Assembly (NCBI GenBank): GCA_964035545.1
Contig: OZ037771.1
Location: forward strand, 13,267,133 to 13,331,132
Reading direction: 5' to 3'
DNA: 64,000 bases
DNA from: Bugula neritina
Taxonomy: Eukaryota; Animalia; Bryozoa
In this document: piece by piece, positions 8,027 to 43,169 of the stretch
Layout: the number at the start of each line of letters is the position of its first letter
Numbering within the stretch: position 1 is the stretch's first letter
The notes under the pieces: model-generated
What the model was told of the DNA's origin: nothing
What the model saw: the letters and a program-made list of their open reading frames with translations, nothing else
Database searches by the model: none
Translations under genes and position numbers: made by a program

Positions 8027-11000
8027 ATGTCTGGTACTCAATGGCCACGGGTGCTAGACATGACTGAGGATGACTCAAAGAAGGCCTTACGGAGCATAGA
8101 ACTTGTAGCTTACTCATCTGTTGTCTCAGCATTTAGAGCTCAAGGCGATCTTACTGACCAGAAGAATAAATTACTTACGCATCTACGGGAGTTGTTAGGG
8201 TAGTTATCTTATCTAGTTTCTCACTGGAGTTCAATCAGTGACTTTTTCAAAGGCTTCTTTACTGACATATTCAGTTTGTTCATGCAGTCTATCTATATAG
8301 GGTAAAACAACTTTTTTTGGCTATTAAATATTTGACTTTATTTTAGTTCTTGTTTCAACAATAAATCAACTCTTTACATAAATAATTTATCAACTAACAA
8401 TGAGTTTGCATCTTGTAGGATTTCTGGAGACAGACACAGGGCTGAGGTTCGCCGCTCAGTCAATGATGAGAAACTATCCACTATTGCATTCCAGTGAGCT
8501 CTACTCTCTCTCTGTTGATTTACTCTCTAGAATTAGTGTCATTTGTCTTTTCAGCTAGTTAGGAATAATCACTTATAATATTTCATGATGCATGAAATAA
8601 AAATAAGGTCCATGATTGGAATGCACTAAATAGCTAAGAAAATGTTTAATGTTTTATCAATATGAACACGCCGTCCTAACAAGACCTGTCTTACTTTTTT
8701 TTGTAATGGTAAATATCCATAGAACCATTAAATGGCTCTTTTACATTGAATCTGAAAATTTTTTGTTGTTTTGTACTTGTTAATAGAAAATTTTTTGATT
8801 CATTCATACTACCCAACATTCAGCTGAGTGTGCTGCAAGAATGAGTTATTGAAAGGCAGGTGTATCAGAAATGATATTAATTACACCCTCAAATGATGTC
8901 TCTAGCGGGCATTTTCATCCTATTACATCATAGATTTTACGTTTACAGGCCTCGTACATTTTCATCAAATTTTGTCTAGTTTTTTACGAGAAAGTTTGAA
9001 GTAGCAGAACATCTTTCAACATTTTCACGTGTTTTCTAGTCTGACTGGCCAAAGCCATGAAGGGCAGTGGATAGTTGAGGGGCGTCGACTAGCCCCCCTA
9101 TCTGAACGACTGACCCTTCACACGGCATACTCTAGTCTAGCTCAGCAATCGGCAAATGTGCAGGTAGGAACATATCATATAGCATATTTTATACGACAAC
9201 AGTAAACTCAAATGGTTGTCTGTATTTGAATTTGATAAGTTTAAAGATACTCTCTACATGCTCCTCTCACTAATACCTCTCTCACTAGTGCCCCTCCCTC
9301 TATGTACTCTCTTACCAGTACCCTCTCACTAGTACCCTCTCACTAGTATCCTCTCACTAATCCCCCTCTCACTAGTATCCTCTCACTAGTACACTCACTA
9401 GTGCCCCTCTCACTATTGCCTCTCCCTCTATGTACCCTCTCACTAGTACCCCTGTTACTAGTTGCCCTGTGTAGTATCATATATATACTTAAACATTTGA
9501 ATTTGTCTTCTCTGTATTCCAGGCGAATAAGAATGCATTGTTGCCACAGCCTAGCCTCACGGGTAACAAGGAACAGATGGCAAAGCCGGGCATCCTCTCC
9601 AACCCACCCGCAGTCCCACAGCCCATGACACCCGCCAACACAACCTCTAGTATAATCTCACCAGCTCTCTCTTCCAACTGCGCCTCAGGCACCCCGTCTG
9701 CTCCTGTCACCAAGTTCAGCCGATCTCGCAGTCCCAACACTAACATTGTGCTGCTACCCAGTGGCACTTCTATACATATCAAAGGTAGTGTAGACAGCTT
9801 GTCGAATATGTGTATACAGTGTGTGTAGACCAAGTGTAGAGGGAGTGTAGACAGTGTATAGACTAAGTGTAGACAGTTTGTATAGACTATATATAGATAG
9901 TGTATAGACTATATATAGACAGTGTATAGACTAAATGTAGACAGTTTGTATATACTATATATAGACAGTGCATAGACTAAATGTAAACAGTTTGTAGAAT
10001 ATATATAGACAGTGTACTTCGTGTAAATGTAAAGATGATTTGCATAAACTCATACCACTGAGCTCTCGCTCTATTCAAGATTATTCAGAAGGTTGTAAAT
10101 GATTACTTAAGTGTATGTGACTGAAAGCTGTTTGTAGAAGTCACTGCCATGTGAATAGAGTGTATGCTCTATACCGAACACCTGGAGGCTTGATCTTTCT
10201 CTCTGAGTGTAGAAATCGTTCAACTCTACTAATCGCTCTGTTAGTCAATATAGTTTGTGGCCATCAGTTTAAGTGCAAGTTCTCGTCTGTAGGAGGACTG
10301 AATCTAGATGAAGACGAGGATATCACCGGTGCAAAGAGAAGGCGAATCGCATCGACTGACGCAGTCGTAGCGACGAGCAAGCAGATAGTCGGCCGAGGTG
10401 GGCAGATAACTCCTATGAAGCTGACTCTCAGTAAGGCCAGCTCGACGTCTGCGGGGGCTCAGCAGAAGGTGGGAAGTTTACAGTATTACTATAGTGTAAT
10501 ACAGTATTACTATAGTATAATACAGTATTACTATAGTATAGTACAGTATTACTATAGTATAGTACAGTATTACTATAGTATAGTACAGTATTACTATAGT
10601 ATAGTACAGTATTACTATAGTATAATACAGTATTACTATAGTGTAATACTGTATTATACTATAGTATAATACCGTATTACTATAGTATAGTACGGTATTA
10701 CTATAGTATAATACAGTATTACTATAGTGTAATACAGTATTACTATAGTATAGTACAGTATTACTATAGTATAGTACAGTATTACTATAGTATAGTACAG
10801 TATTACTATAGTATAGTACAGTATTACTATAGTATAATACAGTATTACTATAGTGTAATACTGTATTATACTATAGTATAATACCGTATTACTATAGTAT
10901 AGTACGGTATTACTATAGTATAATACAGTATTACTATGATGTATAATACAGTATTACTATGATGTATTGTGTAGTGTCTTGTTGATATGATATAGTAAGT

Positions 11001-14000
11001 TGTGTGTAGGTATGATATTGCTATAGTATAGCACAGCACTAACACACTGTAACATCGTATTACCCTGGTATATTACTTTATTACACTGGTATATTACTGT
11101 ATTACACTGGTATATTACTGTATTACACTGGTGTATTACTAATAATACTGCAGGTATTACTGGTACAGTCCCCCAGCACTCAGAAGTCATCTGTGACTCT
11201 CACCAGTTCTTCCATAACCACTACAGTCACTACTACTAAGACCACCGTACCCATAGTCAAGTCCATCACTCCTGCTTCGTCTCACTCCCCTATCGTATAT
11301 CCTCTCACTTCTTCGACTAGTTCCACTCTGCACACTGAGTCCTCAGTCAGTACAGGTAAGTCACACCGCAGACGCACAGACAGATGTAGGTACCTACACA
11401 GTCACTCATACTTTTTGGTGTTGAAAACTCAGAAAATAATTGAATTTCTTAGAATTTGAGTATTTATATTTCAGCATGTAAATATTGTATGTGACTTGTG
11501 TGTGTATATCACAGCTGATACGGTTGTAGGGCCGCGTATTCACACCCAGCAAGCTCTCACAATACAGAAACCCCGCACCAAGGCTACTATCACCACCTCT
11601 CTCTCCCCGGCCAGACTTCCCGGACACAAAACTCCCATCACAGTGAGTCGTCATGGAGTGGTACTTCCTGTACCGGTAGAACCTGCTAGCCCCGGCATTG
11701 CCACGGCACGCACGGGTGTTCACGTCAAACAAGAGGGGGGTAAGTTACTTCCACAGCGTCACAAACCTACTAGTGGTTGAGTCTAAGTTCGAGAGAACTG
11801 AATAGGCGGGAATCGTGTTGTCACGTAACCTGTTGTTTTGATTGCAATCGTATTAAACAGTTTGCTGCGCATGTTTTATCTGTCAAGTAAAAGTAAAAAG
11901 TTGTCATTTCTTGTACTCAGACTACTTCCACACTTTCTCAGACTACTTCTTCTCTATGACTATCCCGTAGGGCTAGTCTATGCATGTGTTCTGTTGAGTC
12001 AGCCGTGAGATGCTGACTAGCATGTGTTGACAGCTGATGTGAATATGTAATCTAGAACATTCTATACAACTGTCTGTTATGTAACTTATGTGGTTGCAGC
12101 AATGAAAATCATCACATCTAGTAACAGCAAGCTACTGCCGAAGCCAAACTATGCTGTCAGCTCGTCCGTAGTGGTGGTAACGTCAGCGGTGTCCAGCAAC
12201 ACGCTGGCTGCACCCCAGAGGAACACAGTCATCACCCGTCCCGGCAGCACCGCCGCCGTGGCCATCAACAATAACAAAGTCATCAGCATACACACCGGAG
12301 GGAAGGTTCTTAGCAGCGGCCACGTCTCATCGGCGAATACCCTGAAAACTCACAAGTCTCCTGGATCCACCACTACTTACAGGGGTGTGAGTCTCACTAG
12401 TACCTCCACCACTGCCAGCACTTCTGGTAAGGCCGGTGAGTTGTTTTCCATGTCAATAACTTCTAAGTGGTTTTGTCATGTGCCTGTTCTTCTGTATCCT
12501 AACAGGTGGTGGATAAAGTCACAGGTGGTGTAACGGGATGTTGTGTCACTTGTTAATATCAACTCTATGACTGTTTACAGCTAGCGTGTCCTTTGCAGGG
12601 AGTGTGGTGATAGTACAGCAACCTGGTCAGGTGATGCGAGGGGGCAACTTCAAGCCTAGCAGGCAAATCATATCTACTGTGAGCAATCCACCACTGGAGA
12701 AGGAGGTGGTCGGTCTGATGCAGAAGCAGGGGGTGTCCCTAGACACCAACAGTCTGGTGAAAACTATCACTAAAGCTACTTCTCTGCCCACGACTATAAA
12801 GACTATCACTGCCAGCCCCGTGGGTGTTGGTGTGAAGGTAATCTGTCTGTCTGTGTGTCTGTCTGTATATCTCTCTGTCTGTGTGTCTGTTAGTCTTGAG
12901 TAAGTTACACTGTATGGTATCTCTCTCTTACACTTACAGAGTACCGACTCTTACAAAGTAAAGACCGACGGGAAAGTCATGTCACCGTACATAAATCAGC
13001 TGCAGCAGAGCGTATCCAGCCAGTCACACAGTCACATCATTGTGACATCACTTCCTTCCACTCAGACGCTGCCGTCGCCGTCTCCCGGCAGCAGCAAGTC
13101 TAGCACCTCCCCATCTCAGCACGGCACAGGTATTATATATACTGTATTATATACTATGTTATATATACTGTATTGTATATACTGTATTATATACTATATT
13201 ATAAACACTGTAATATATTCTGTATTATATATGCTGTATTATATACTCTGTATTGTATACTCTGTATTATATATACTGTATTATATACTTTGTATTATAT
13301 ATACTGTATTATATACAAACGGCAGGGTGTTATGAGGCTGTTTCTTTTGTCAGATGACCAGTGACATTAAACATCTCATTCGCCCTGTGCAGCCAATCAA
13401 ATTCACTCACATTTGTTCTTGTGTTTGCTAAGCTGACGTGTCTGTTGTTTCTATGGTAACGTTTTCTTTCTGACTGTTGCAGCTGCCAAAACTATTCCTA
13501 GCTCCACCCTTTGGCTCCAATCTTCCAGCTACCCCCTGTATACTACGGTTGACAGTGAGTACCCTTCCCAGCGTGCCCCAGCGCTCTCTGGAACTCAGAC
13601 TACGTTGGCGACCGGTAAACCAGTCACCACCTCCACGTCAAGCGTATCCACTTCTGAGTCTGTTACCACCGTCCCCCCTAAGATGGGTGAGTTTTGATTT
13701 AGTATAGTAACTAGTCACTCTAACTACTAACTCTCTAGTACTAACTACTAACTCACTAGTACTAATTACTAACTCTAGTACTAACTACTAACTCTCCAGT
13801 ACTAACTACTAACTCTCTAGTACTAACTACTAACTCACTAGTACTAATTACTAACTCTCTGATACTAACTACTAACTCTCTAATACTAACTACTAACTCT
13901 CTAATACTAACTCTCTAATACTTACTACTAACTCTCTAGTACTAACTACTAACTCTCTAGTACTTACTACTAACTCTCTAGTACTTACTACTAACTCTCT

Positions 14001-17000
14001 AGTACTAACTACTGACTCTCTAGTACTAACTACTAACTCTCTAATACTAACTACTAACTCTCTAGTACTAACTACTAACTCTCTAGTACTTACTACTAAC
14101 TCTCTAGTACTAACTACTAACTCTCTAATACTAACTACTAACTCTCTAGTACTAACTACTGACTCTCTAGTACTAACTACTAACTCTCTAGTACTAACTA
14201 CTGACTCTCTAGTACTAACTACTAACTCTCTAGTACTAACTACTGACTCTCTAGTACTAACTACTAACTCTCTAGTACTAACTACTAACTCTCTAGTACT
14301 TACTACTAACTCTCTAGTACTAACTACTGACTCTAGTACTAACTACTAACTGTCTAATACTAACTACTAACTCTCTAGTACTAACTACTGACTCTCTAGT
14401 ACTAACTACTAACTCTCTAGTACTAACTACTGACTCTCTAGTACTAACTACTAACTCTCTAGTACTAACTACGGATTTCTGTCTTCTCTGTAGACATATT
14501 CTCCAGTGCACTCGCAGAAGCTGAAATATTTCTCGATCCTTACGAGTTTATTGACGAGGAAGATTCAGCAACAGCTACCACATTGACCTCTCCTGTAGAA
14601 ACTGCAAATGTGCTGCCTTTGTGGCCGAGCGCTCCTGTAGACAGCAGTGCTGTGATGCCTCTGGCGGAGGAAGGAGGAGAGACAAATCCCGCTGTCTATC
14701 ATCTCTCTCAAGGTCAGAGTCGTGTTACACTATTGGCTGGACTAGCATGGCGCTGGGGCTTCTCTATGTTGATATACTTGATATGAAATATTCTTACTTC
14801 AAGTTATTCCACTGTTACTATAGTGATACTCATTCCTAGCAATACACTGCACTAAATTCTATTCTCTACACTAAGCACTAGATACTAGAGGTTAGCACTC
14901 TCTTACTAGATACTAAGGGTTGGTACTCTCTCACTAGACACTAGGAGTTAGTACTCTCTCACTAGATACTAGGGGTTAGTACTCTCTCACTAGATACTAG
15001 AGGTTAGTCATCATTCCCTAATATTACACATTGAGTTTTGTTGTTACCAGGTGCTGCCATTTTGAGTGGAGATCTTCCATTTATCACTCAGCCAGTTGTC
15101 ACGACAGCGTCCTATGACCTGCCAGACGACTTGCTCAACACAAGTCATAGATTCTCAGTGATTGGCTCTACTCTTGACCAATCAGCCACAGCAATTTCCA
15201 CCATCGGCAGCGTCAGCAGTATTGGTAATAACACAAGCACCGTCAGTGGCTCCAATCAAATCATACTTCCTAAAGGTAAAGAAGCTATTAGGATAGTAAC
15301 AGGTGCATCAGCTACCACTACTGGTCTAGCAGGACTAACTGTGGCCAACAGAGCACAACTCTCTCAATTAGGCGGGGTGGATGCATCTAGTCCCCGTACT
15401 GTAGATATACAACCGAAACAATCTCATGCTACACCTATTAGCTATGTTAGTGGGGGCCTGGCACACACCTCCCCTACTATTGACACTAAGATATTGATAC
15501 TGCCCCCTGGCATAGGGCAGCCCCCCACCCCGGTATCTGCCCCTACATCTGCTTCAGAACTTTTTCTACCCACAACTCATGTAGAGACCAAAAACTTCAA
15601 TCCTTTTATACCATCATCTCAGTCGGTAAGTTTGGCCGCCGAATGTGTAGGAGCAGATCTGGAAAAGAGCAGAGCTTCTTCGTTGCAGACTTTAGATTCT
15701 AATATTCGATCCTTAGCAACGGATAAACAACCAGAAGACACTCAGGTAACTTGTTTCTCTTCCTTGTCGATCTTCTAGCTAGCCTTAGTTTTTGTAGCAA
15801 ATTTCCAGATAGATGTTGGTTGTGGATGAGTTTGAATCATATTATTTGTTGTAGATAATATCTTCTGCTGTCACAGCCTTGTTGGAACTCAATCAAGAAC
15901 CGATCGCCGATTCAGCACATATCTCAGCCGATAATACGGTGGTTATGACTATGGAAAATCTTTTACCTACACGCCAGTCCACCATTTCGTCCAGTGCTGC
16001 GACCTCATCCAGTGTAGGATCTGAAATCAAGCAAGATACGAATGAGTCTCAAAATAAACATTTGCAAGCAACCGTCGTTAGTTCTGCTCAAATCACGAGC
16101 AGCACGGTTATGGCCAGCGCTGTTTCAGATACCTTTAGTTGTGCACCTATAGTTGACACTAGTAAGCTTACTGTTGTAACGACCGCTGATCTTTGTGTTC
16201 TCTCCAATACACAGCCAGTGGTAACCACCACTAGCACCTCTAGTTCGATCACTATTCTACCCTCATCTCATAGTCATTCTTCTTTAAAAGACTCTTCAGT
16301 CACCTCTACTAGTCACTCTTCAGTACGTTCATCTGATGGCTGTCTGACTGAATCTGAAGGTCAAACCTCATATCAAAGAATATCGGAGGCGGTTCCTATT
16401 CCAAAGATTGAATCAGAAACATTAACAATGTCCAAAGTAATAGCAGCGCCAGATACAGCGACTACATCCAAAGCAATAATAGAGTCAGAAGATGCTACTC
16501 TGTCCAAAGCAATAGCAGAGTCAGGAGAAGCGACTACGTCCAAAGCAATAGCGGAGTCAGAAGTAGTTGCGTCCAAAGCAGTAGCGGAGTCAAAAGAGGT
16601 AACAATGTCAAAGAAGGTGGACGAAAAGTCAACAGACAAATCATCTAATGATGAAGTTGGAATGGCCAGTAATAAAGATAATATCGATCAGAAGTACTCA
16701 TCTACAGATGACACGATGGATCTTGACTTTGAAGCTGAAGATGATGACCTGATGAATGATCAAGATGCTAAAGTCATAGATAAGCTGACAATTGTTGGAC
16801 CAGAAGGCAATCTAACAATGCTAGAATATGAAAAAGGCTTGTATATAGAGAAGACCGTGGTTACAGATAATACCAAGAACACAGTTGCCAAGTCAGCTGT
16901 CATCGAAGATGAGCATGCAAGTCAGGCACCAGTTGAATCGTCCAACAGTGGTTCTAGTGTGTTAACAGATGTGTCGGAGAAATGTGATACTAGTACCAGA

Positions 17001-20000
17001 GTTGAAAAGAATGGTGACTGCGAAATGATCACCGAATCTCCGGAGGTAGGTAACCATGAGATGGATGCTGAGGTCGCTTGTGCCAGCGTATCAAGTGATA
17101 TCCTAAATAAAGCGCAAGGGGTAATTGCTGATAAGTCTAGCGATTCCAATGATAACTATAGCTTAGCGGTTGAGAACACATCAACAGACACCAGTCAAAC
17201 TGTGACCAACACACAGGAGTGTAGTACTTCTGTATCAGACCAGCAGATATATCCTGCCTATTCTCAAACTCTAATATCTGTCCAAAATGATTCATTACTT
17301 GAAGGCCAGGTTCAGTGTGATCCGAATTCTTCCAACAGCAATGCAGCTCAAATACAAGATTGCTCTATAGCACCATTTTTTTCAACTGAAAACCACAATT
17401 TTTCTGTTTCAAAAGATATTGGTGAGCCAAAGACAGATACTATATTGAACGAGTCAGTGCATTTATCCGAACAGTTAGAACCAATAGATGTTAAGAAATG
17501 CGAAGATGTAAAATTAACTACAAAAACAATGGCACCAATAGAGTCTTCAATTTCTAGCATTTTAGAGAAATTGGAGCAACCTGTTGTTACTCCGACACAA
17601 CAGTTGACCTCAACTTCTCTCAGTCCTGCAGGGTGTGTTGACCCAACTATTTCTGGTGAATCAGAAATTGAGGAGTCTAAGGTTTGCAATGTTGTTGAGG
17701 AACTCCAGTCAGTAGTTCCCCAAATTTCAGACAAGGTAACACTTGCCATTCATAATGTTTTTGAGAAAGTGGAGCAAACTGCTGTTACACTGAGCAATGA
17801 ACAACCATTAACTACTCACATCACAGAAAAAGCAGAAGCCATAATTTCTGACTGTTTACATCAGGTTGAACCCGTAATTATTAGCAATTCTAAACAAATG
17901 GAACCAGTAGTTGGTGACAATGCAAAGCAGGTGGAACCAGTAACTGCTGACACTTCAGAGCAGGTTGAATCAGTAAGTCCTGGTGTTTCAGAGAAAGTGG
18001 AACCTGTACTTGGTGAAAGTCTCGAACAGGTGGAACAAGTAATTGCTGACCATCCAGAGCAGGTTGATGCGGTAATTGCCGACAATCTAGAGCAAGTGGA
18101 GCCAGTAATTGCTGGCGAGTCAGAACAAGTTGATCCAGCTAATAATTCAAAGCAGATAGAACCAGTGAGTGCTGGTGTTTCAGAGAAAGTGGCACCTGTA
18201 ATTGCTGGTGCTTCTGAGAAAGTAAAGCATGTGGTTAGCAATGTAGAAAAAACAGAGTCAGCAATTGACAATTTAGAAAAGGTAGAGTCACCCATCATTG
18301 ATGTCTTAGAAAAACCTGAGCCGTTAGTCGCTAGTGATATAAAAATGTCAGAGTCAGTAGATGTCAGTGACTTAGAAAAGGTTCAGCAAACAGTTGCGGG
18401 CAGTCTAGAGAAGGCAGAGTCAGTAGTTGCTAGTGACATCACAAAGGTAGAGTCCGGAGTTGTGGAGTTGACAAACATAGATTCAAAATTCACTGATCAA
18501 CAACTTCATTTATCACATTCAGAAAATGAGAATTCGGTTAGCAACTTGAATGATTCTGCATCTGTCTCTGAGTCTAGTTCATCAGAAAATCACTCCTTGT
18601 TTGGTGATGATACGATAAATTTAAAACTAGTGAAAGCTAACGCACCAGGTCATAAGGATGTGTCACAAAATAAAAGTACAAACAGTGCTGAACTTGTCTC
18701 TCCTACTCCATTAGCTTCAGCTGTTTCAGAAGATACTAGAAATTCTTCTGAGTCCTCTCCTCCTCCTCTTAGACCAAAGCACTTTGAAAAAGTATACCGC
18801 CCACGCAAGTCTGTAGGCAACAGTAATGATGTTAGTAAACACACCTCAACAAACAATGATATTTCAGTAAATTCAGCTGCTGAGAGCGATTCGCAAAACA
18901 TGCAACCAAATCAAATTTACAGCGTCGCCCGAAGGGAAAACTTTAACTCTGATAATATTTCCGCTAAACTTGACTGTGAAACCAGAACACCTCTCTTAAT
19001 TCTCCAAAGAACTCCAACCAAAGATGTACCATCTTCAATAGTGAACGGCACTTCTCAACTTGTGCATTTAGAGAAGAACTCTATTGGGAAGCTGGAGGAA
19101 ATGGATGGAAACTCGGATTACCTGGCCGACAGCTGTAATTCAGTGTCCAATGGCCCAAACACCTCTACAACAGTAAGTTTTTATTCTCTTTCGTATACTA
19201 AAGGATTGAATATGCCAGTGCATTCTCAAGAGCATGCTCGAGTTTTCGCGAGTTTTGCATAAACCTTGTTTCTGTTGATACAGATGAGTCAAGGAGAGGA
19301 AAGTGATGACGAAGACGCCACAGTTAAGTCAGACGGCAGTACTCCAACTCACAGAAGTAATGTGAATACAGAGGGGCATGTTTCTCATCTCTCCCACGGG
19401 AGAAAACGACGTAGAAAGTCTGATCACAGTCCTTTCTGGTTCAAAGGTGCTCTCGGGTATGTTTGATTGCCTATGACTCATACTTCTACAGAATTGAATA
19501 ATTACCACAGTGAAGATTTCACAGTGGTGTGTAAGTAAACAAGACTCTTCTGTGAAACATCAGATTTGCTGTTATTTGCCTTGAGCAGTATTGAACAGTC
19601 TGCTGTTTTCATCGCTCCACTAACCGTTGTGCAAATTGTATTTGTAGTTTACTGAAAAGGGTGATGATGTACAGGGGAATTAATCGACCTAAGGGTGAAC
19701 ACGGGGCCGCTGCCTGGTTCCTCAAACCGGTTTCTGATGATGAGGCCCCAGGCTATTCGGCCATCATATCTCAACCCATGGATCTGAGTACAGTGAAACG
19801 TAAATTAGAGGTCGGTTGAGTACAAATTGCTAATCACTGCTCAATCTTTCTAGATTGCTATTTGAATTTAAAACTTTAATGACGCTTTAGCATTTTTCAG
19901 CTGCGAGTTTTCAGTTATTAAGCTTTTATTTCTACTTGTCTTAATATTTGAAGTGATACTGAGAACTGACAGCTATGTCCGTGCCATGTTATTAGTTGTT

Positions 20001-20676
20001 TTCTATCGACCAATCAGCACTTTTGTTTAGTATTATTGGCTATTTCTAGACCAATCAGTACCCGACTCTTGAAGATTTCAAATCGGACATGATGCTCATT
20101 TACTCTAACTGCTGTGTTTACAACCCGCCAGAACACAACGTCAGGAGAGACTGTGAACTCGTGTTTGTCTACTTCCGACAGGAGTACGAGAAACTGGTCA
20201 ACAAGCTTCACCAGCAGGTAAGTTTCTATCTCCAGCTGTCCACTAAGCTTCTTCTTACTGATAATAAATTGTAACTCTAGCAGTTGAGTTGTAAGTAACC
20301 TTTCAAGCCCTTCTAGTATAAAAGTTAAGTCCCCATCCCTGTGAGAACGAACCCCTGAAGTTGTAAATAGTGTCTCAACATGCTGTCAACGTAATTAGAG
20401 GGTTTCTGCTTGGAGCAGTTATGATCAGATGCCTTTCCCGGCATCATCAATGGCTTTGCCGGGATTCAAACCTGAAACCTATTGCTTACTCTGCCAGGGG
20501 TCAAACCTGCAGACTGTATATTCCTGAATACTTGTGTATATTCTCCTTCTGGAATCTTCTAGTCTGTTCTGCAGACATGTGTTCATGCTGTCTTCATGCT
20601 TTATATTCAGGCAACCGGAGAGGCTGAGAGAAAGAAAATAAAGATGGAGGCCAACACAACAGTCCCGCCCACATAG
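8027..20676 (+). CDS. EMSY: EMSY-like protein: N-terminal ENT domain, long S/T-rich and acidic disordered region, C-terminal bromodomain; 18 coding exons, ~2335 aa
   Basis: Exons 8027-8199, 8419-8493, 9040-9163, 9523-9784, 10293-10468, 11154-11355, 11515-11739, 12100-12435, 12599-12837, 12940-13129, 13483-13686, 14494-14712, 15051-15745, 15855-19172, 19284-19456, 19648-19810, 20050-20217, 20611-20676; all GT-AG and phase-compatible (7008 nt). N-terminus WPRVLDM...ELVAYSSVVSAFRAQGDLT...RHRAEVRRSVNDEKL...WIVEGRRL is an ENT domain. C-terminus WFLKPV..EAPGY..II..PMDL.TV..KLE...Y...DF..DM.LI..NC..YN is a bromodomain. Confidence 0.9.
9255..9462. repeat. Degenerate ~14-16-bp minisatellite (CCCTCTCACTAGTA)n
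   Basis: Visible in EMSY intron 3. Confidence 0.8.
9812..10015. repeat. Degenerate minisatellite (AGTGTATAGACTATATATAGAC-like)
   Basis: Visible in EMSY intron 4. Confidence 0.75.
10478..10962. repeat. 21-bp tandem minisatellite (ACAGTATTACTATAGTATAGT)n
   Basis: About 23 copies starting ~10 bp after the donor at 10469. Confidence 0.95.
11055..11142. repeat. 21-bp tandem repeat (TATTACACTGGTATATTACTG)n
   Basis: About 4 copies just before the acceptor at 11152-11153. Confidence 0.85.
13130..13316. repeat. AT-rich degenerate minisatellite (TGTATTATATATAC)n
   Basis: Begins at the donor GT at 13130. Confidence 0.85.
13447..13460. promoter_or_regulatory. RFX X-box-like motif GTTTCTATGGTAAC
   Basis: Matches the 14-bp imperfect palindrome GTTNCYATRGNAAC; intronic, function untested. 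Confidence 0.3.
13705..14472. repeat. 21-bp tandem minisatellite (TACTAACTACTAACTCTCTAG)n
   Basis: About 36 copies filling nearly all of EMSY intron 11. Confidence 0.97.
14870..15008. repeat. ~28-bp tandem repeat (CACTAGATACTAGGGGTTAGTACTCTCT)n
   Basis: About 5 degenerate copies. Confidence 0.8.
20380..20510 (-). mobile_element. Probable tRNA-derived SINE fragment
   Basis: GCCGGGATTCAAACCT at ~20458-20473 is the reverse complement of a Pol III B-box-like GGTTTGAATCCC; last EMSY intron. Boundaries are uncertain. Confidence 0.4.
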
Positions 20677-21405
20677 CAGTGTGAGAGTACAGTCTACTTA
20701 CCCATGAGTCATTGTGTATATAGTGTACATATTATATCATAGTGTATATAACTATGTTACGTATAATATCTGTGCCTTTGCTGTTCCACCCGGGGATACA
20801 GTACCCACAGTAACGCCAGTATAAATGCAAGCCATGCTCATTTGTCATAATTCAGATGTTAATTTTTAAACTGTGTGCCACTTCTATATATCTATAGCTG
20901 TTACAGATAAATTTCCTACTTATTTTATTACCAATAATTGTTTTTTATTGTTGTAATTTTACTGGTTGTTGTATTATAAACAAGAGACTATGACTTTACT
21001 GTTCATGTTCGATTGTATCTACTTATGTATGATGCAGTCATATATTATGGTCTCTTGTAAGTTCACTATCATGATGTTACAATATAATGTAGTCTTTATG
21101 TAGCAGTAAAGTTCGTTGATATTAAGTTTTGTGAACTTGCAATATCCTTTCGACAGGATCTGCTATGGATACAGAATAAAGATAATATAATTTATTATTT
21201 TTTCTAATTTTCCTCAAATTATAAAAATTTCAACAACGCAGGATATTCAGGTACAAACAAATATTTATTAGTAAATAAATAAATAGAATAAAATAAACAA
21301 TTTTTATAGGACTTCACATAGAAGTGCTGCTAGATGAAATGAATCACTAGAACTCTATCAAAGTTATCACAATTGATGCTGTTTGGTGTTGATATGACAC
21401 TGTTC

Positions 21406-31105: not shown

Positions 31106-32473
31106 TCAATGATTTTGCTGCCGATTGAGAATGTTGAGCTGAGCCATAGTTTCAGGGGTGGCTGACATTTTCAGCAGTTTGTTTTCTTGTTCCAGCAGAT
31201 TATTTCTCTCTAAGAGTTTGGTTATTTGTAACTTCAAATCTTCCACTTCTTCTCTAACCGCCAACATCAGGTGACTCTTGACCAGGTCCTGAAAGAGAAC
31301 AGAAAGCTGTCTTAGTAACGCACATAAAGATTAGACAACTCTAACAAATATGCAAACAATGTCCTAATTTTAACCAAACTATACTATAGTTCTTGTATTT
31401 ACTTGACTTTACACAGTTTCATATGAATAGAAAAACCCTTTTGAGGTAACATATGCAACACTTGCCACTTTATTAAACTAAAATTAAAGGACATTGCATA
31501 ATCAGCAAGCCAACGAAAGCTACACATTACAACTTTTCAACACAGCTATTGTGGTACACAACTACGCGATAAAACACAAGGGACTGGAAGAAAAGTGTTA
31601 TACCAGATCTATTATCTCAATGAATAAAATTACTAGAAACAAAACACCTCCTGAAATGCTACAATAGCTCCACACAGTCCAGCTGTGAAAAAACAGGCCA
31701 GCTTAAGCAAATATGAAATGGAGCTGATTACATAACCAATATAATTCACAATCAGCGCTTTGTTGGCCATAGAAATCCCTGATCAATACTTTATTGTATT
31801 GTAGAACTGTATAGTGGAAAATAACTGAACTTTCCATGGCCAACATTCATATGATTGCAGGGAGCTAAAAGAAGCTAGCTTGAGAATCAAGCAAATGGCT
31901 TGAGAAATGGTTCAGCATTAAGATAAACCCACAGAAACTCAAAGCCTGCCTATGATATGTTACTCTGGCAACTACTAGAACCCCTCTATCCCTCAAAGAC
32001 TTGAGTAGCAGAGTTTAGAGTATTTTTAGAACAAAAAGCAAGTCTAGAAACAAACTATTTTTTATTAAAATTTTCACATAAATAACTCAGAAGTGATCCT
32101 TTAGCTTCCCTGATACACCAATACAACACGCAACTCACACAATACGTCAAAAGTCCTCAACAAGAACCCAAAAAGACATCAAAAGCAGGATTCCACTGCC
32201 CACTATCTCTACACACAGCAGTTAACACAGAGACTAACGGAATACAAACACAATTCAAAGAAGCCTCAATTATTTCTGGATTGAGTTGAGAATTGGCTAG
32301 ATTTTCTCACAGAGTTTAGTATTTCAACACAATTAGAAACTACAAAGCATTATTAAAACTAGTAAAATGAAAGTGCGCTAGTTATAATAAAAAACCATCG
32401 AGACAAATTGATAGTTTACAAAAAGTAGCAGAGGTAGTAGTAGTAGTAATAGTAGTAGTGGTAGTAGTAGTAC

Positions 32474-32524
<51 letters not shown>

Positions 32525-32546
32525 CAGTAGTAGCAGTGGTAGCAGC

Positions 32547-32580
<34 letters not shown>

Positions 32581-32728
32581 CTAGTAGTAGCAGTGGTAGC
32601 AGTAGTAGTAGTAGCAGTGGTAGCAGTAGTAGTAGTAGCAGTAGTAGTAGTAGTAGAAGTACTAGTAGTAGTAGTACTAGTAGTAGTAGTACTAGTAGTA
32701 GTAGTACTAGTAGTAGCAGTAGGAGTAT

Positions 32729-32764
<36 letters not shown>

Positions 32765-32787
32765 GGTAGTAGTAGTAGTAGTAGTAC

Positions 32788-32835
<48 letters not shown>

Positions 32836-35800
32836 CAGTAGCAGTAGTAGCACAGTATCAATACAGCAGGTAAACTTTCTACTTACCATTGCCTGCTCTA
32901 TTTTATTGTCTATGGCCACGCCAGTTGCTGCAGCACTACAAAACATAACAATTGCATGTGAAAGATGGTATTTTCAATATTTACATATTAACTAGGAAAA
33001 TTGAGTTGAACCTGTAAGGAGAAACTGGTTCATGAGAAGTCAAAGGTTTGGTGGTCTTTGCCTTGAGCACATTGTAGCACATTGTAGCACATTGTAGCAC
33101 GTAGTAGAGTAGATAACTGCAACTAGTTGACCCAAACAAGTGGTGATGGAAAATTCCATATTAGGCATATTATTGCACAGGAATAACCAGCGGGACAAGC
33201 TGTCCACTATTGGTAACTACTAGAGGCAGACCCTGAGAAATTACTTCGACTAGCGATTACTACGAGATATGGCTGGTCGTCGACCTACAATTATCCTAGT
33301 ATTGCCTCTAGTTTCTGCAGGCACTCAGACAACACGCAGCCAACAACCTCACTTTTCTGTTCTACTTATACAATTCCTACCCTGGGACTCAACAAGCATC
33401 GCCATGAGATACTTCGGGAGTGTTTGGTTTTCAACAGAAGAAAATTCCTACATACTTCTTAGTTGAACCAAACACGAGGTGGTGAAATTGTAAAAAGCAA
33501 TATTTAAGTTACAAGCAGTCTGATGATTTTCAAAAATTTAAAAAAATTTCAACTAAAAGCCAAGTAAATGAATATTAACTATGAAGGTAAAGATTAGAAT
33601 AGAGCTCTACTCACTTTATAGAATGCATATTGAGATAAATTCCTAACAGTGACAAATAACGCAAAATTATTTTTCAAAACATTTTAAAACCTAGCAGTCT
33701 GTAAGAACATTCCCAACTGAAACTTATTCAAAGCGTTTCCACCTGAACAGATTTTAATATGCTAAAGAATTTCCTCTACAAAAACTATATGCATATATCA
33801 TTTCTTCCCACATACCTGTCCTTAAAACAAGAATATTGGTTAACATGGGCAAGTAGCAAACCCAGCCTGAAATTAGTAGATCAACAGAAATAAAGAGGGG
33901 GGAATAACACGTACTCACAAATTTTTAACAAATACTAGGCTGAGCAAGGGCAATAGCAAGAAGTAGGAGAGACTGAATAAGTCCGACATTGCCGCTGCAC
34001 AATGGAGTATAACTACCTTTCACTGTGGCTAGGAGAGGTGGGAGAATTTAACACAGAGTCAAGACCGAGAAAGAAAGCGTGAGAACTGTCAGCATCTCCT
34101 ATGCCGCTGTCGACAGACCTGGCTCGGTACGACACTGATGTCTTCTCCTTGGGCGACAAGATCGCTCTAGAGGTCGATGGTTGCAGAGAGAACATTAAAA
34201 CACTAGTAGTTGTAGTCACAGGTTTGTTGGTATGACAGAATTGGGGAGGCACCATTTCTGCCCCCAACTTTGACTAGTAAATGAGCAGGAAGAACGCTAG
34301 TTTACGGTTCCATGAAGTACGCTCCTTCTTAGTACGATGGTGCGTGTATAATATTAATATTTTCAGCAATCAGCTGTTATTATCTAAGCAAGCAGGGAAT
34401 TATTGAAATCAATAGCCAATGAAAACAGTTGACACAACGACACCTTCAAATCTAAATCCATACAGTCGTATCGTGGTGATGGATTATATATAAGTTATTA
34501 ATACACGATCAATCAGAAAGAATGTTTAATGTGTAAACGCAACAGCAGAGCATGGAGGTTCAAATACACATTCATTGCATAATAGAAACAAAAGAAATCA
34601 ATAAAACACTTCAGGCCATTTCGTAATAGCAATAGCAACGACAGGGCAGCAAGGGCAGCAAACACCATTACTCTACAGCACTACTCTGAACTTGAGATAT
34701 TGATTACAGTGTTGAATGAGTAAGCAAAAAGATACCTGCCAGCTCTAGCTCAGAGTAATCAATATGAGGAGAGACTACGCCTAAACATGACACATACATA
34801 GATAGAACTAGTGGTGCCAGGCCCAGCTGCCAGGCCCAGCTGACAGGCCCAGCTGACAACATGGCTGGTTAGAACCCCTAGATGTGTAGAATTAGCTGCT
34901 TATCGCAGCAAGTCTTTAGAAAAACCCCCCTCCCCCCACCAGCCCTGCTTTCCACTCTAAAACCGCGCTAAGGGTTACTAGATTACTATATCTGTTAGAT
35001 TGCTAAATGGAAGTTTCCAAGTAATCAAGAGGCAACTTAGAAGCCACCGAATTGCTTGCATATGACTCCATAACTTTAGATAGCACAATATTACTTAAAT
35101 GCTTATGAAAGGATGTTTGGCTGTGAAGTACAGAGCGAGTTGAGCTTAAAACCAGTCTGATGCTGTCAACTGTGTGAAGGTGCTGCCAACTTACCCGTGA
35201 GTGAAATGCCTGGTGACACAACTCCACCGCCTCGCCATTTGAGGAGAGGAGACGGACAGCGAGTTTGACAGCGTCATGTTGCAGATACAGACAGACAGAC
35301 AGACAGACAGACCAGAACAGAATGAAGAGTCAGCACTGAAGTGACACATAAGACTAGACATGGAGGGGGTGACACTTGACAGGGGTGTAGTAAAAAGGGG
35401 CAAGGGGATGTGGATCCAGTAGGGTCAAAAGAGAGATGATTACAATTTCTCACTCATGAATAACAGCAACAGACAAACTGGGTGACAAAGGCAAGCAAAA
35501 CCTCAACAAAGAAACATTCTCAAAGTGAAGGGGGCTCATTCCCCCAAGCATATCAACACATACTGGATCCACCACTTTTAGTGGAGAGGGAAATCAGAAG
35601 TACATCTAAGATAGGCTGAGAACTAGGTTGCTGTAAGCTCTTGAGATTAGTGAAGTACCCCATGTGGGCAACTAGCTGGGTGTGCCTTTCTTATACTCTC
35701 GCAACTGGGAGGTAAAATGCTGCCCCAGTAATTTCACAGCAGAGCAAATTGACCTCTAGGGCAGAGTGAAGGCCGCACACTGCAGGTAACATAAACACAT

Positions 35801-38800
35801 TGACCCTCTGTTACCTGAAGTTCACCTTAAACGCTGACCCAAGGAGGTATATTTACAGCGTGCTGAGTAGATTACAGTTGAATATCTCCAGGAATGATAA
35901 TATTGTGAAAAGAAAAACACTCATCGTGCTGTCTATTGATTAATTCAGAAGAAAAGGAGATTTAATGCAATTACCAGGTCGAAGTACTTGCTCAATAACT
36001 CATAATTAAATGTATGCAAATATTATTAAATATGTACTCAAAAGCAGTGTGAAGAAATTAAATTAATAAAAGCCTAATGATTGACAGGTTACAGTGAAAA
36101 CTAACTTACACATATTAACTGCACACGGGTTCAACTACCTCCACCATGCATGAAGAAAAAGAAAAACAACTTTAAAAAAGTTTGTGCAAAAAACCTTCTT
36201 AAAAGTAAGCAACACCAACATGATTCAGCACATTTATGTTGAATATAGGTCTTACCATATATTGAGAATGAACAGAACTTCATGCTGCATGTATGTGAAA
36301 AGGACAGATAACTTACAAATACTGATACAGTAGAAATAATAAGAAGTTATCATTCCTTGGCAGTTAGAGTTCAGTCAGGTCACATGCTGATAATATAATG
36401 TATGTACGAATGGGAAGACAGAGGGCAGTATAGATAAGATTGAGAGGGACATGTGATATTATGTTACAATTTGAATAAGTTTATATCTCAGATGTAGAGA
36501 GCAGTAGCTTCTAGTTTCTAGACTGCAGTCAACACACCTTAGTTTACACTGTAATAAATATTTAGTCAGTTTCTAAAATACACTGGATAGAATTAAAATC
36601 ACTTTATAAGGACACAATTCCAGACCATAGCATAGCAAGACAAAAGGAACGGCCGAGTAGAGAGGAAGTGAACCCACAATGCAACTCTTAAAGAATGTCA
36701 ACAGAGTAATGACAGTGGAACCAGTAATATTTCTGTTCTACATGGCGTTTGCTATCGGAGTGGTGGCATTCCAGCAGACTCTCTACCTCAAACTCTGCTA
36801 CAAGGAATACAGAAACCTGAGTCTCTGCAGCGACAGCGCCTGGCAGCAGCAGCACCCCGGAGTTCAGTCTGACACCTCTACCTGGATCTTATACTCCACA
36901 ATAACCAACCTCGTACCTCTGGTTGTATGCATCATCATGCTCAGTGGATACAGCGACAAGAACGGCATCGCCTTAGCCTTAGTTCTGCCTAACATTGGCA
37001 GCCTCATAGCGGTGGGTTGGGCGATAGTTCTTACTGTATACATAGAGTGGGATCCTGTTTTACTCCTACTGACTAATTTCATAGGCGGGGCGACTGGGTA
37101 CTACCCGACCATGACAATGGCGTGCATGACCTACGTAATCAGAGACCCGGATGTTAGCAATCTCGGACTACGCATGGCCGTGATAGAGGGCCTACAGGCT
37201 TTCTCCACTGCTCTGGGAACAATGGTAGCTGGTCCTCTCATAGAGCTGCCTGACGGGCTGACCTACGCCTGGGCTGTGGCAGCAGGGTGCTACGTGCTGT
37301 CAATACTAGATCTGACCTTCAGGGTCAAGCGACTGTCGGCCCCGGGGCAGCAAGGAGAAGAGAGAGAGGGGAGATGCGTTGCACTGCGCAGCTGCTTTGA
37401 CCTGGACACCATCAAGAAATACTTTGTGGTCATCTTAAGGAGTAGAGAACAGAGCAAACGTCTCCACCTGTACGTGGTGCTGGCTGGAGCTATGATAAGT
37501 TTCCTAGCCTACTCCGGTCTAGTCAACGTCATATTCCTCTACCTCACCAAGGAGTACGGGCAGAGTTTGACTCAGTACAGCGTATACGTGGGACTCGGCT
37601 GTATCGCTGCTCTGTTCGGCAGCACCGTCCTCGTACGAGTGTTCACCGTCAACTACCCTCTGAGTGACATGTCCTTCGCTGTGGTTGGCTCAGCCGTAAC
37701 CACCATATACTACATACTACTCGGCTACGCCGACCAGCCCGGGGCCTATTGGGCGGCCCCCGTATTCAACATCTTCCTGGGATACGTGGCGATTGGGAGC
37801 CGACTCTACATATCTCACACCCTAGAGAGCCACGAGCAGGCGGGGGGCATGGGATTCTTCTCTCTAGTCCAGTCGGTGGTGGGGCTGGCGGCGAGTGCTC
37901 TATATAACACAGTCTACCCGCTGTCCCTCCACTTCTGGCCAGGAGTCTGCTGCACGCTGTCTGCCTTCCTGTCCATCATCACCATACCCATGTTCACCCT
38001 AGTGCGCTGCCGTGACATCAGAAATGGCGCTGACTCGCCGGCAGCAGAACACAACCAAACAGCAGACAGAAAGACTGAGTTTTATTCCTCTTATAACAAA
38101 GCGAGTGAAACCACAAGACTGCTGAGTTAAGGCCAAAACCAAGTGGCAACGTGGGACATGGTGGGATACAGAGTAAACTCCTAAGGGGGAAACATGGTTC
38201 TATATAGTGTACCCAGTACTGTGATATTTTAATACTTTATACAACATTATATTCTGAAACTTATATATTATTTATTTTTGGTATCTGCTATTCTATGTTC
38301 GTTATACTTCTCACTCTTTATTGTTCCGTCCACCTAGACTTGACAATAATCAAATACATTGAGCCAGAGCTACTTTCCAGTGTTTTATTAGAGGAGGTGG
38401 GGGGGGGGGGTTGCTATAACTTCCCTGTATACCCAATATTATGGCATATTGTTTATTCAACTGACCACAGGCTAGACTTAGGCTAAACACTGAGCAACTC
38501 TGTTTATATAAAAGTTACATTAAACAGAAGTCCTAAATACCAACCCACAACTTTCCTAATCTAGTAAAACAGATGAGCTAGGAACTGATTGTGAAATTAA
38601 TGTGAACCTGAGGTCATGTGTACTTGATGATAATGAGTGGTTATCAGCAGAAAACATGACCAAAGATTATCCCACACCATACTCTTTGACTACCCATATT
38701 GACAGGCGGAGTAAACAGTGTATGAGCAAGACACAGGGAAGAAATACACCATCTAATTTATGTCCCAATAAAAGCACTACTAGAGAGTTGTCTGTCCCAA

Positions 38801-42894: not shown

Positions 42895-43169
42895 TAACCT
42901 CAGAGACAGGCTCGCATTCGGTAGACACCAACTGTCAACCTGTAAATCACATAACTCATTAGAAACTTTTACAGACATGAAATACAGTTGAAGAGAAATG
43001 GGCAAAGTTTGAAGAATAAATCTATCAAGTTTTCTTAATGAATCACATGAATGTTGATTAACTTCTTAAGATGGTGGGCAGAAAGTTTAGTATGTGCTTT
43101 CTCATACATTAAAACTGCACTAATTGCATTGCAATAGAATAGCAGTTGATTGGCAAATAAACGATCTAA

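Follow-up and report, generated by a model that had tools for sequence, protein, structure and literature searches.

An EMSY-like gene of the bryozoan Bugula neritina with an N-terminal ENT domain and a C-terminal bromodomain

The question raised by a 64,000-nucleotide stretch of the Bugula neritina genome (assembly GCA_964035545.1, contig OZ037771.1, positions 13,267,133 to 13,331,132) is whether an EMSY-type protein can carry its own acetyl-lysine reader. The whole stretch is called the window below, and positions are counted from its first letter. A preliminary description had assigned 18 exons at 8027-20676 to an EMSY gene in which an ENT domain is fused to a bromodomain. An answer should account for the joining of the two ends in one gene, the distribution of this arrangement among animals, and the possible role of a bromodomain in a protein that is studied in its ENT-only form. 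It is highly probable that the locus is a single-copy-looking EMSY orthologue in the ancestral metazoan form, which would act as a SIN3/HDAC-KDM5 scaffold with an acetyl-lysine reader in cis. The gene is a divergent, unusually long EMSY-like orthologue and an ordinary annotation for this genome.

Exon chain and transcript evidence

The 18 exons on the plus strand comprise 6978 nt in total, which corresponds to 2325 codons and a TAG stop, with the start ATG at 8027 and the last base of the stop codon at 20676. All junctions are canonical GT..AG and none of the exons has an in-frame stop. Frame continuity was judged from exon lengths and single split codons, and every search was run exon by exon. 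Pfam recognizes ENT (PF03735) in exon 1 (scanned as 8027-8197; E 1.8e-12, 47.6 bits against a cutoff of 28.5), and exon 2 continues the same profile at positions 43-65 (E 3e-4). At the other end, Bromodomain (PF00439) is matched by exon 16 (scanned as 19649-19810; E 2.8e-11, 43.7 bits against a cutoff of 21.7, profile positions 10-47) and by exon 17 (20050-20217; E 7.7e-7, 29.4 bits against the same cutoff, profile positions 49-83). The proposed in-frame path from ENT domain to bromodomain was thus borne out by both the GT-AG chain and the Pfam matches. The remaining 14 exons, each scanned singly, gave no Pfam family match. One bromodomain is present in the 18 exons scanned, which differ in this from the BET layout of tandem bromodomains with an ET domain.

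A joined model of this kind could also arise from two adjacent genes, an ENT-only EMSY ending in or after exon 14 and a small bromodomain gene starting from the ATG at 19284, with the joint reflecting read-through or an assembly chimera. Exon 15 does begin with ATG at 19284, and the preliminary description had itself pointed to transcripts that end before this position, with a separate transcription start for the bromodomain exons, as an outcome that would speak against a fusion. The transcripts were examined in Logan contigs of four runs (X1, X2, X5 and X11) from four studies, over positions 15000-20700 of the window. Contigs of these runs skip the introns at 15745|15855, 19172|19284, 19456|19648, 19810|20050 and 20217|20611, the first two of which are joined in all four runs. 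After correction for the reported cut shifts, each joint is bounded by GT..AG; 15745|15855 is read through one differing letter and a one-base leftward shift of the reported cut, and 19172|19284 through two differing letters. Single contigs of 1.9-2.5 kb (record 4 of X1, record 13 of X2 and record 18 of X5) run from the middle of exon 14 into 19284-19455, across the position where a separate gene would start, and carry 770-830 more letters that were not itemised. Each joint 3' of exon 15 is represented by one contig per run, at the same depth as the contig that joins exons 14 and 15. On the 5' side, contig letters that overhang before 15049 are the last bases of exon 12, in agreement with a junction 14712|15051, and exon 12 to the stop codon is joined by spliced contigs.

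Because contigs span exon 14 and the first bromodomain exon and the downstream joints occur at the same depth, a separate bromodomain gene is very unlikely, to the point of being negligible. The contigs prove neither a single transcript nor the sites of transcription start, but the joint at 19172|19284 is a canonical in-frame splice found in every run. Moreover, about 70 database orthologues from at least nine phyla hold ENT and bromodomain in one protein of 1050-1870 aa, and exon 15 holds the basic stretch and the beginning of bromodomain helix Z immediately behind non-bromodomain sequence, an order that the orthologues share. The ATG at 19284 encodes an internal methionine in an exon that flanks the domain, and is unlikely to serve as a start.

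The same contigs bear on the long exons. Length differences between contigs and window are all multiples of three (3, 3, 3, 18, 30 and 33 nt, and a 48-nt repeat gain); the 30-nt difference is made up of eight insertions that lie side by side at 16524-16534 in X11. Of the 40 substitutions listed for exon 13, 22 are at third codon positions and 23 leave the amino acid unchanged. These in-frame indels and the substitution pattern of exon 13 indicate that the long exons are coding and under constraint.

Orthologues and the spread of the layout

Orthologues match exons 1, 2, 3, 4, 5, 7, 8, 12, 16 and 17 in protein order (tblastn of more than 25 orthologues). The collinear blocks met after the ENT domain are SEW..EGRRL, VLPSG..IHIK, KRRR, MKIIT and an acidic LDP..F block. 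Since the orthologues align collinearly, both ends of the locus, the one with ENT and the one with the bromodomain, trace back to one ancestral gene. The best-matching orthologues are lophotrochozoan (nemertean, pectinid and solemyid bivalves, brachiopod and annelid), with 50-63% identity, which probably reflects a spiralian that has no near kin in the protein collection.

A HMMER scan with exon 1 of 1.84 billion cluster representatives retrieved 172 ENT proteins, and 15 of the best 150 of these end in a bromodomain that matches exons 16 and 17. Within the ENT set phmmer gave E values down to 5.6e-20 for exon 16 and 5e-17 for exon 17, and the match was always C-terminal. All eight relatives scanned with Pfam have ENT at residues of about 14-82 and Bromodomain in the last 130 residues or so. 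Proteins with both domains are named 'BRCA2-interacting transcriptional repressor EMSY-like' in Branchiostoma, Ptychodera, Acanthaster, Lytechinus, Antedon, Haliotis, Liolophura and the octocoral Dendronephthya, and 'EMSY-like protein' in Mya; those of Owenia, Pinctada, Plakobranchus, Bulinus, Tubulanus and the millipede Chamberlinius are unnamed or hypothetical. A search with a 14-member full-length profile against a collection of 5.8 billion proteins extended this set, with PF03735 and PF00439 precomputed together for about 70 of the best 120 matches. Further carriers in this search are, among molluscs, oysters, mussels, scallops, Dreissena, Solemya, Aplysia and Biomphalaria, and elsewhere Lingula, Capitella, Paralvinella, Lineus, Saccoglossus, Glandiceps, Strongylocentrotus, Patiria, Asterias, sea cucumbers, Strigamia and the tick Ornithodoros. 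Several entries (Strigamia, Capitella, Elysia, Batillaria and Mytilus) bear the UniProt title 'Bromo domain-containing protein'. Among the relatives listed, the layout occurs in at least nine phyla from Cnidaria to Cephalochordata, the groups being molluscs, annelids, nemerteans, a brachiopod, echinoderms, hemichordates, amphioxus, myriapods, a tick and an octocoral.

Vertebrates do not share it. Every vertebrate among the matches listed (skates, sharks, teleosts, frogs, turtles, birds and mammals including human) has PF03735 only, as the preliminary description had said of vertebrate EMSY, and the bromodomain is also missing from the insect representatives Glossina, Ceratitis and Anabrus and from a caecilian. 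No cryptic bromodomain came to light in ENT-only EMSY when the other 135 ENT representatives were searched, at the --max setting, with a hidden Markov model of the last 200 residues of the family (best E 0.7). The alignment of the caecilian with a hemichordate EMSY-like protein stops just before the hemichordate bromodomain, and BLASTP of the caecilian against amphioxus and hemichordate gave no C-terminal match except a weak one (E 0.027) just upstream of the bromodomain. The combination of ENT domain and bromodomain is the ancestral eumetazoan form of EMSY, whereas vertebrates and insects have a derived form with ENT only. The bromodomain was lost at least twice, in vertebrates and in insects or a wider pancrustacean group.

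The layout is not a new fusion and is already annotated in databases. The suggestion that the Bugula gene is special or uncatalogued did not survive, given some 70 relatives among the best 120, from at least nine phyla and mostly named EMSY-like. The architecture can be called well described as far as databases go, but not in the literature searched, where no paper on a bromodomain in animal EMSY was found. The pairings of ENT and bromodomain in that literature are in trans only, namely Arabidopsis GTE4 (a BET protein) with EML1/2 and a Leishmania ENT protein with BDF5. Most animal phyla thus keep an EMSY bromodomain according to the databases, and its ancestral presence seems to have gone unremarked in print.

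Some database models of the family, P0210 of Solemya velum and P0240 of Elysia crispata, look mis-joined with neighbours. One has a PF00246 peptidase ahead of ENT, and another has a PF13843 transposase-derived domain after ENT and no bromodomain.

The bromodomain and its possible function

The motifs that the preliminary description had listed as a retained acetyl-lysine pocket (WFLKPV, APGY, PMDL and NCCVYN with the anchoring Asn), as well as the basic GRKRRRK, are all found at the locus. In HMMER alignments the Trp/Phe shelf, the Tyr of APGY, PMD and the YNPPxHxV BC loop fall on the corresponding residues of BRD4 BD2. Exon 16 is 63% identical to the Owenia orthologue. Complete orthologues show no variation in PMD or in the Tyr residues of the ZA and BC loops, and at least 90% of them keep the anchoring Asn, with Pinctada set aside because its C-terminus is disrupted; the window has PMDL where orthologues have PMDF. 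By eye, the tail of exon 15 (WFKGALG) and the beginning of exon 16 (LLKRVMMYRG) resemble the family consensus SWxRAALGLLQRVSRFRG. Exon 15 belongs to the bromodomain unit, since the intron 19456|19648 splits helix Z, and its GRKRRRK corresponds to SKRKRKAP in the consensus of the family alignment. Taken together, the sequence of the domain has an intact-looking acetyl-lysine pocket.

The model of the Owenia bromodomain is a four-helix structure with a predicted local distance difference test score (pLDDT) of 91.2. In Foldseek comparisons it gave target-normalised template modelling (TM) scores of 0.8-0.93 with known bromodomains, which include BAZ2A (up to 0.93), BD2 of BRD2/4, CREBBP and GCN5. 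Placement of the domain in a known subfamily was tried with half-domain phmmer searches against the PDB, with the family profile against the PDB and with Foldseek of the orthologue model. PBRM1, BET BD2, TAF1, RSC4, GCN5, BPTF, BAZ2A and CREBBP scored about equally at about 32% identity, and no assignment was made. A first impression of likeness to BRD8 was dropped, no BRD8 chain being among the PDB results.

Our reading of the locus supposes one message of 18 coding exons, transcribed and spliced together. The protein would have an ENT domain at its N-terminus for dimerisation and partner binding, continue through a long and disordered middle rich in Ser and Thr, and end in a basic stretch for nuclear localisation followed by a canonical bromodomain. 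The ENT end would dimerise and hold partners, and the bromodomain would dock a deacetylase/H3K4-demethylase assembly on acetylated, active nucleosomes, which are the substrate chromatin of this assembly; vertebrates and insects would have lost the cis reader later. A role in docking the SIN3/HDAC/KDM5 assembly is proposed because EMSY is a SIN3-HDAC1-KDM5/LID subunit in flies and mammals. Drosophila EMSY (CG15356) is a component of the SIN3 220/LID/HDAC1 complex and is needed for viability (PMC6242963), and human EMSY sits with KDM5A and SIN3B (PMC6242963 and its reference 38). Human EMSY furthermore binds HP1-beta and BS69/ZMYND11 (PMC3122151).

A number of points weigh against this reading. 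The label 'RNA' of the runs is a guess, although the intron-less GT..AG joints show that the contigs derive from spliced RNA. The contigs are 90-99% identical to the window and the differences are common to the four studies, so their source would be a diverged allele or a sibling species and not the sequenced individual. They cover exon 12 to the stop, and exons 1 to 11, including the link from the ENT domain to exon 12, are joined only by frame and collinear orthology. They display neither transcription starts nor isoform ratios, and a minor isoform with the bromodomain only, or without it, is possible. The fold was obtained for the domain of the Owenia orthologue, and the bromodomain of the window is known from two half-domain exon matches. 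For a bromodomain-bearing EMSY, acetyl-lysine binding is a prediction and SIN3/KDM5 membership is transferred by orthology from ENT-only EMSY. Finally, WF replaces the usual WPF shelf throughout the bromodomain-bearing EMSY family, in the window and in every aligned orthologue, and is the only visible departure of this bromodomain from the norm.

The last of these points could be taken further. The gene could be single and its bromodomain still not a reader of acetyl-lysine, but a structural or protein-protein module or a binder of a non-histone or other acyl mark, in an EMSY-like protein that works outside SIN3/KDM5. The family-wide absence of the shelf Pro would be consistent with this, as would the lack of a characterised subfamily with which the domain clusters (BAZ2A, BET BD2, CREBBP, GCN5, BPTF and PBRM1 being about equally distant) and the fact that the only EMSY proteins known to belong to the complex are the ENT-only ones of flies and mammals. 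However, the window retains the anchoring Asn with the Tyr before it, the Tyr of the ZA loop and PMD, and so do orthologues all the way from octocoral to amphioxus, apart from the disrupted C-terminus of Pinctada, which is as expected of a working pocket under long purifying selection, and the orthologue is modelled as a standard four-helix bromodomain. We consider a non-reading bromodomain improbable on these grounds, with a small chance of being correct.

If the bromodomain does read acetyl-lysine in this family, a broader scenario can be considered, which we offer tentatively and as doubtful. EMSY of the cnidarian-bilaterian ancestor would have been an acetyl-lysine-reading SIN3/HDAC-KDM5 subunit, and the reader would have been lost independently in vertebrates and insects, perhaps with its task passed to partners in trans. 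A candidate for such a partner may be the EMSY-binding bromodomain-PWWP protein BS69/ZMYND11. Within this scenario, plant GTE4-EML and kinetoplastid BDF5-ENT would show the same pairing of ENT and bromodomain on proteins that are not fused, in the manner of a Rosetta-stone pair. Neither the idea of an ancestral acetyl-reading EMSY nor that of a hand-over in trans was found in the literature searched. To our knowledge, all functional work on EMSY (BRCA2, HP1/BS69 binding and the SIN3B-KDM5A complex) comes from two lineages that lack the bromodomain. A conserved acetyl-lysine reader in cis on a deacetylase/demethylase subunit suggests how such a complex may find active chromatin.

Gene features and comparison with known systems

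The features of the gene are collected in Table 1. The boundaries of exons 5-11 were set from sequence alone, as the best-scoring in-frame GT/AG pairs together with collinear tblastn matches, and alternatives that differ by a few codons exist. Exon 6 had no match in tblastn of orthologues; its donor CAG|GTAAGT fits 7 of 7 scored consensus positions. The donor of exon 16 is 19810|19811 (GAG|GTCGGT) and not a site past the next Gly codon, as needed by the RNA joints and the frame. The 3' untranslated region is collinear with the genome: contigs extend 244-255 nt past 20696, and the consensus of the first letters shown equals the genome. An AATAAA at 21175 is a candidate only.

Table 1. Exons and bromodomain motifs of the EMSY-like gene (positions in the window)
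Feature	Position	Strand	Content and evidence
Exon 1	8027..8199	+	Start codon and first ENT part; GT donor; tblastn 52-64% identity, 15+ orthologues
Exon 2	8419..8493	+	Second ENT part (ISGDRHRAEVRRSVNDEKLSTIAF); 73-83% identity vs orthologues
Exon 3	9040..9163	+	Conserved SEW..EGRRL block; tblastn 38-52% identity
Exon 4	9523..9784	+	Ser/Pro-rich, conserved NIVLLPSGTSIHIK block at end; tblastn matches 9517-9822; splice sites
Exon 5	10293..10468	+	Acidic stretch and first basic cluster (DEDEDITGAKRRRIAS); bivalve-orthologue tblastn matches 10292-10471; boundaries from sequence only
Exon 6	11184..11355	+	Ser/Thr-rich; in-frame GT/AG pair; acceptor uncertain (alternative 11154)
Exon 7	11515..11739	+	Ends ...HVKQEGG (EMSY family KQEGG block); weak tblastn match 11538-11732; family-alignment consensus KPTIQIKQEGGMKIIT
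Exon 8	12100..12435	+	Starts MKIITSS...; tblastn 12099-12440, 31-36% identity, several orthologues
Exon 9	12599..12837	+	In-frame GT/AG chain only
Exon 10	12940..13129	+	In-frame GT/AG chain only; alternative acceptor 13066
Exon 11	13483..13686	+	In-frame GT/AG chain only
Exon 12	14494..14712	+	Conserved acidic block (LDPYEFIDEEDS); tblastn 14487-14675, 40-73% identity; last bases in contig loose ends
Exon 13	15051..15745	+	Transcript-contig coverage; joint to exon 14 in 4 runs
Exon 14	15855..19172	+	1106 codons, one open frame, tiled by transcript contigs
Exon 15	19284..19456	+	Acidic stretch, GRKRRRK (19398-19418) resembling a nuclear localisation signal, start of bromodomain helix Z (WFKGALG); joint 19172|19284 in 4 runs
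Exon 16	19648..19810	+	Bromodomain helix Z, ZA loop, helix A (WF shelf, Tyr, PMDL); Pfam; joints 19456|19648, 19810|20050
WFLKPV	19715..19732	+	Motif in exon 16
Tyr of APGY	19754..19756	+	Motif in exon 16
PMDL	19775..19786	+	Motif in exon 16
Exon 17	20050..20217	+	Bromodomain helices B and C, BC-loop YNPPEHNV; Pfam, BRD4 BD2 alignment, family alignment
Anchoring Asn of NCCVYN	20122..20124	+	Motif in exon 17
Exon 18	20611..20676	+	21-residue basic tail and TAG stop; joint 20217|20611

Two features are particular to the Bugula copy. The first is its length of 2325 aa, against 1050-1870 aa for orthologues (most 1050-1500), so that the protein is about twice as long as they are because of exon 14, which is specific to this lineage. 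This exon is rich in Ser (16%), Val (10%), Glu (9%) and Thr (8%) and contains coding tandem repeats of 36 nt (12 residues) at 16430-16597 and of 33 nt (11 residues) at 17893-18143. Their copy number differs between window and transcript contigs, by in-frame indels of 30, 33 and 48 nt. The divergence of the RNA contigs from the assembly suggests diverged lineages or cryptic species under one organism label, and two of the four runs are filed as 'symbiont metagenome' RNA-Seq.

The second is a motif in exon 3 after EGRRL, which reads APLSERLTLHTAY in the window and PLMPRLVPQTAF in orthologues; both prolines of PRLVP are gone. The 14 bromodomain-bearing orthologues compared, which range from octocoral to amphioxus, all keep the orthologous form, with PLLPRLVPQTAF in the millipede. 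A caecilian keeps it as well, and the tsetse copy is likewise altered. It includes a PXLXP-type site, which the window copy lost, and we take this segment to be the HP1/BS69-binding segment of human EMSY. Membership of the EMSY family stands without the motif, which is a conserved but not a defining feature. The degenerate copy may mean changed binding of HP1 or BS69-type partners, and the partnership may have shifted further in the Bugula lineage, with the cis bromodomain kept and the PXLXP-type motif degenerate. The MYND domain of BS69 recognises PXLXP motifs (PMC6638984).

The window is AT-rich (26-47% G+C), with short open stretches amid minisatellite-rich gaps. The introns of the EMSY gene are full of minisatellites (9263-9451, 9846-10016, 10479-10960, 13130-13316, 13720-14472 and 14876-15008), among them 21-nt units in 23 and 36 copies (91-92% matches) and arrays of 14-, 22- and 28-nt units; their translations appear as long spurious open reading frames (YYYSIVQ..., LVLTTNS...). 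Outside the gene, an intronless open reading frame of 483 aa at 36679-38130 (plus strand) has many hydrophobic segments and resembles a multi-pass membrane transporter. Other open reading frames are one of 422 aa, rich in Ser, Asn and Thr, at 41737-43005 (minus strand) and one of 268 aa at 58289-59095 (plus strand). Low-complexity stretches of Ser/Thr/Pro type at 32390-32960 and 48800-49760, on both strands, cross-match the disordered EMSY-like middle in tblastn, and were rejected as EMSY homology because the matches are compositional. A long tandem array of LCILTL type occupies 48694-49764.

The closest known systems are the invertebrate EMSY-like proteins, for example those of Branchiostoma floridae (XP_035692520.1), Lingula anatina, Magallana gigas, Strongylocentrotus purpuratus (XP_791645.3), Lineus longissimus and Dendronephthya gigantea (XP_028412808.1). 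They share with the window the order of domains, the collinear blocks, the basic stretch ahead of the bromodomain and the pocket elements WF, PGY or PDY, PMD and YNPP..H, at 50-63% identity in the exons that encode ENT and the bromodomain. Vertebrate EMSY (human C11orf30/EMSY) and insect EMSY (Drosophila CG15356 and the proteins of Glossina, Ceratitis and Anabrus) are orthologous over the N-terminal 130-300 residues or so, with the blocks ENT, SEW..EGRRL and VLPSG..IK, and over some middle blocks, but differ in having no bromodomain. Among characterised bromodomains, those of BAZ2A/B, BET BD2 (BRD2/3/4), CREBBP and GCN5 have the same four-helix bundle as the orthologue model, and the BC-loop YNPPxHxV matches that of BET BD2. 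The window bromodomain differs from them in its identity of about 32%, in being single, in lacking an ET, PHD or HAT context and in having WF instead of WPF.

More distant parallels link ENT domains to readers on other polypeptides. Plant EML1/2, with ENT and Agenet/Tudor domains, and the BET protein GTE4 likewise couple ENT to mark readers in cooperation with a bromodomain (bioRxiv 10.1101/2024.07.25.605061). In plants, however, the bromodomain is on a separate polypeptide, the reader in cis is an Agenet domain that binds H3K4me3, and there is no orthology beyond ENT. The kinetoplastid ENT protein LmxM.24.0530 occurs in the BDF5 proximal proteome, which places ENT and bromodomain proteins together at acetylated chromatin (PMC9279504). 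This case differs in being an association in trans, observed by proximity labelling only and in a distant lineage. The EMSY bromodomain offers a testable reason for the co-purification of ENT and bromodomain proteins in plants and trypanosomatids.

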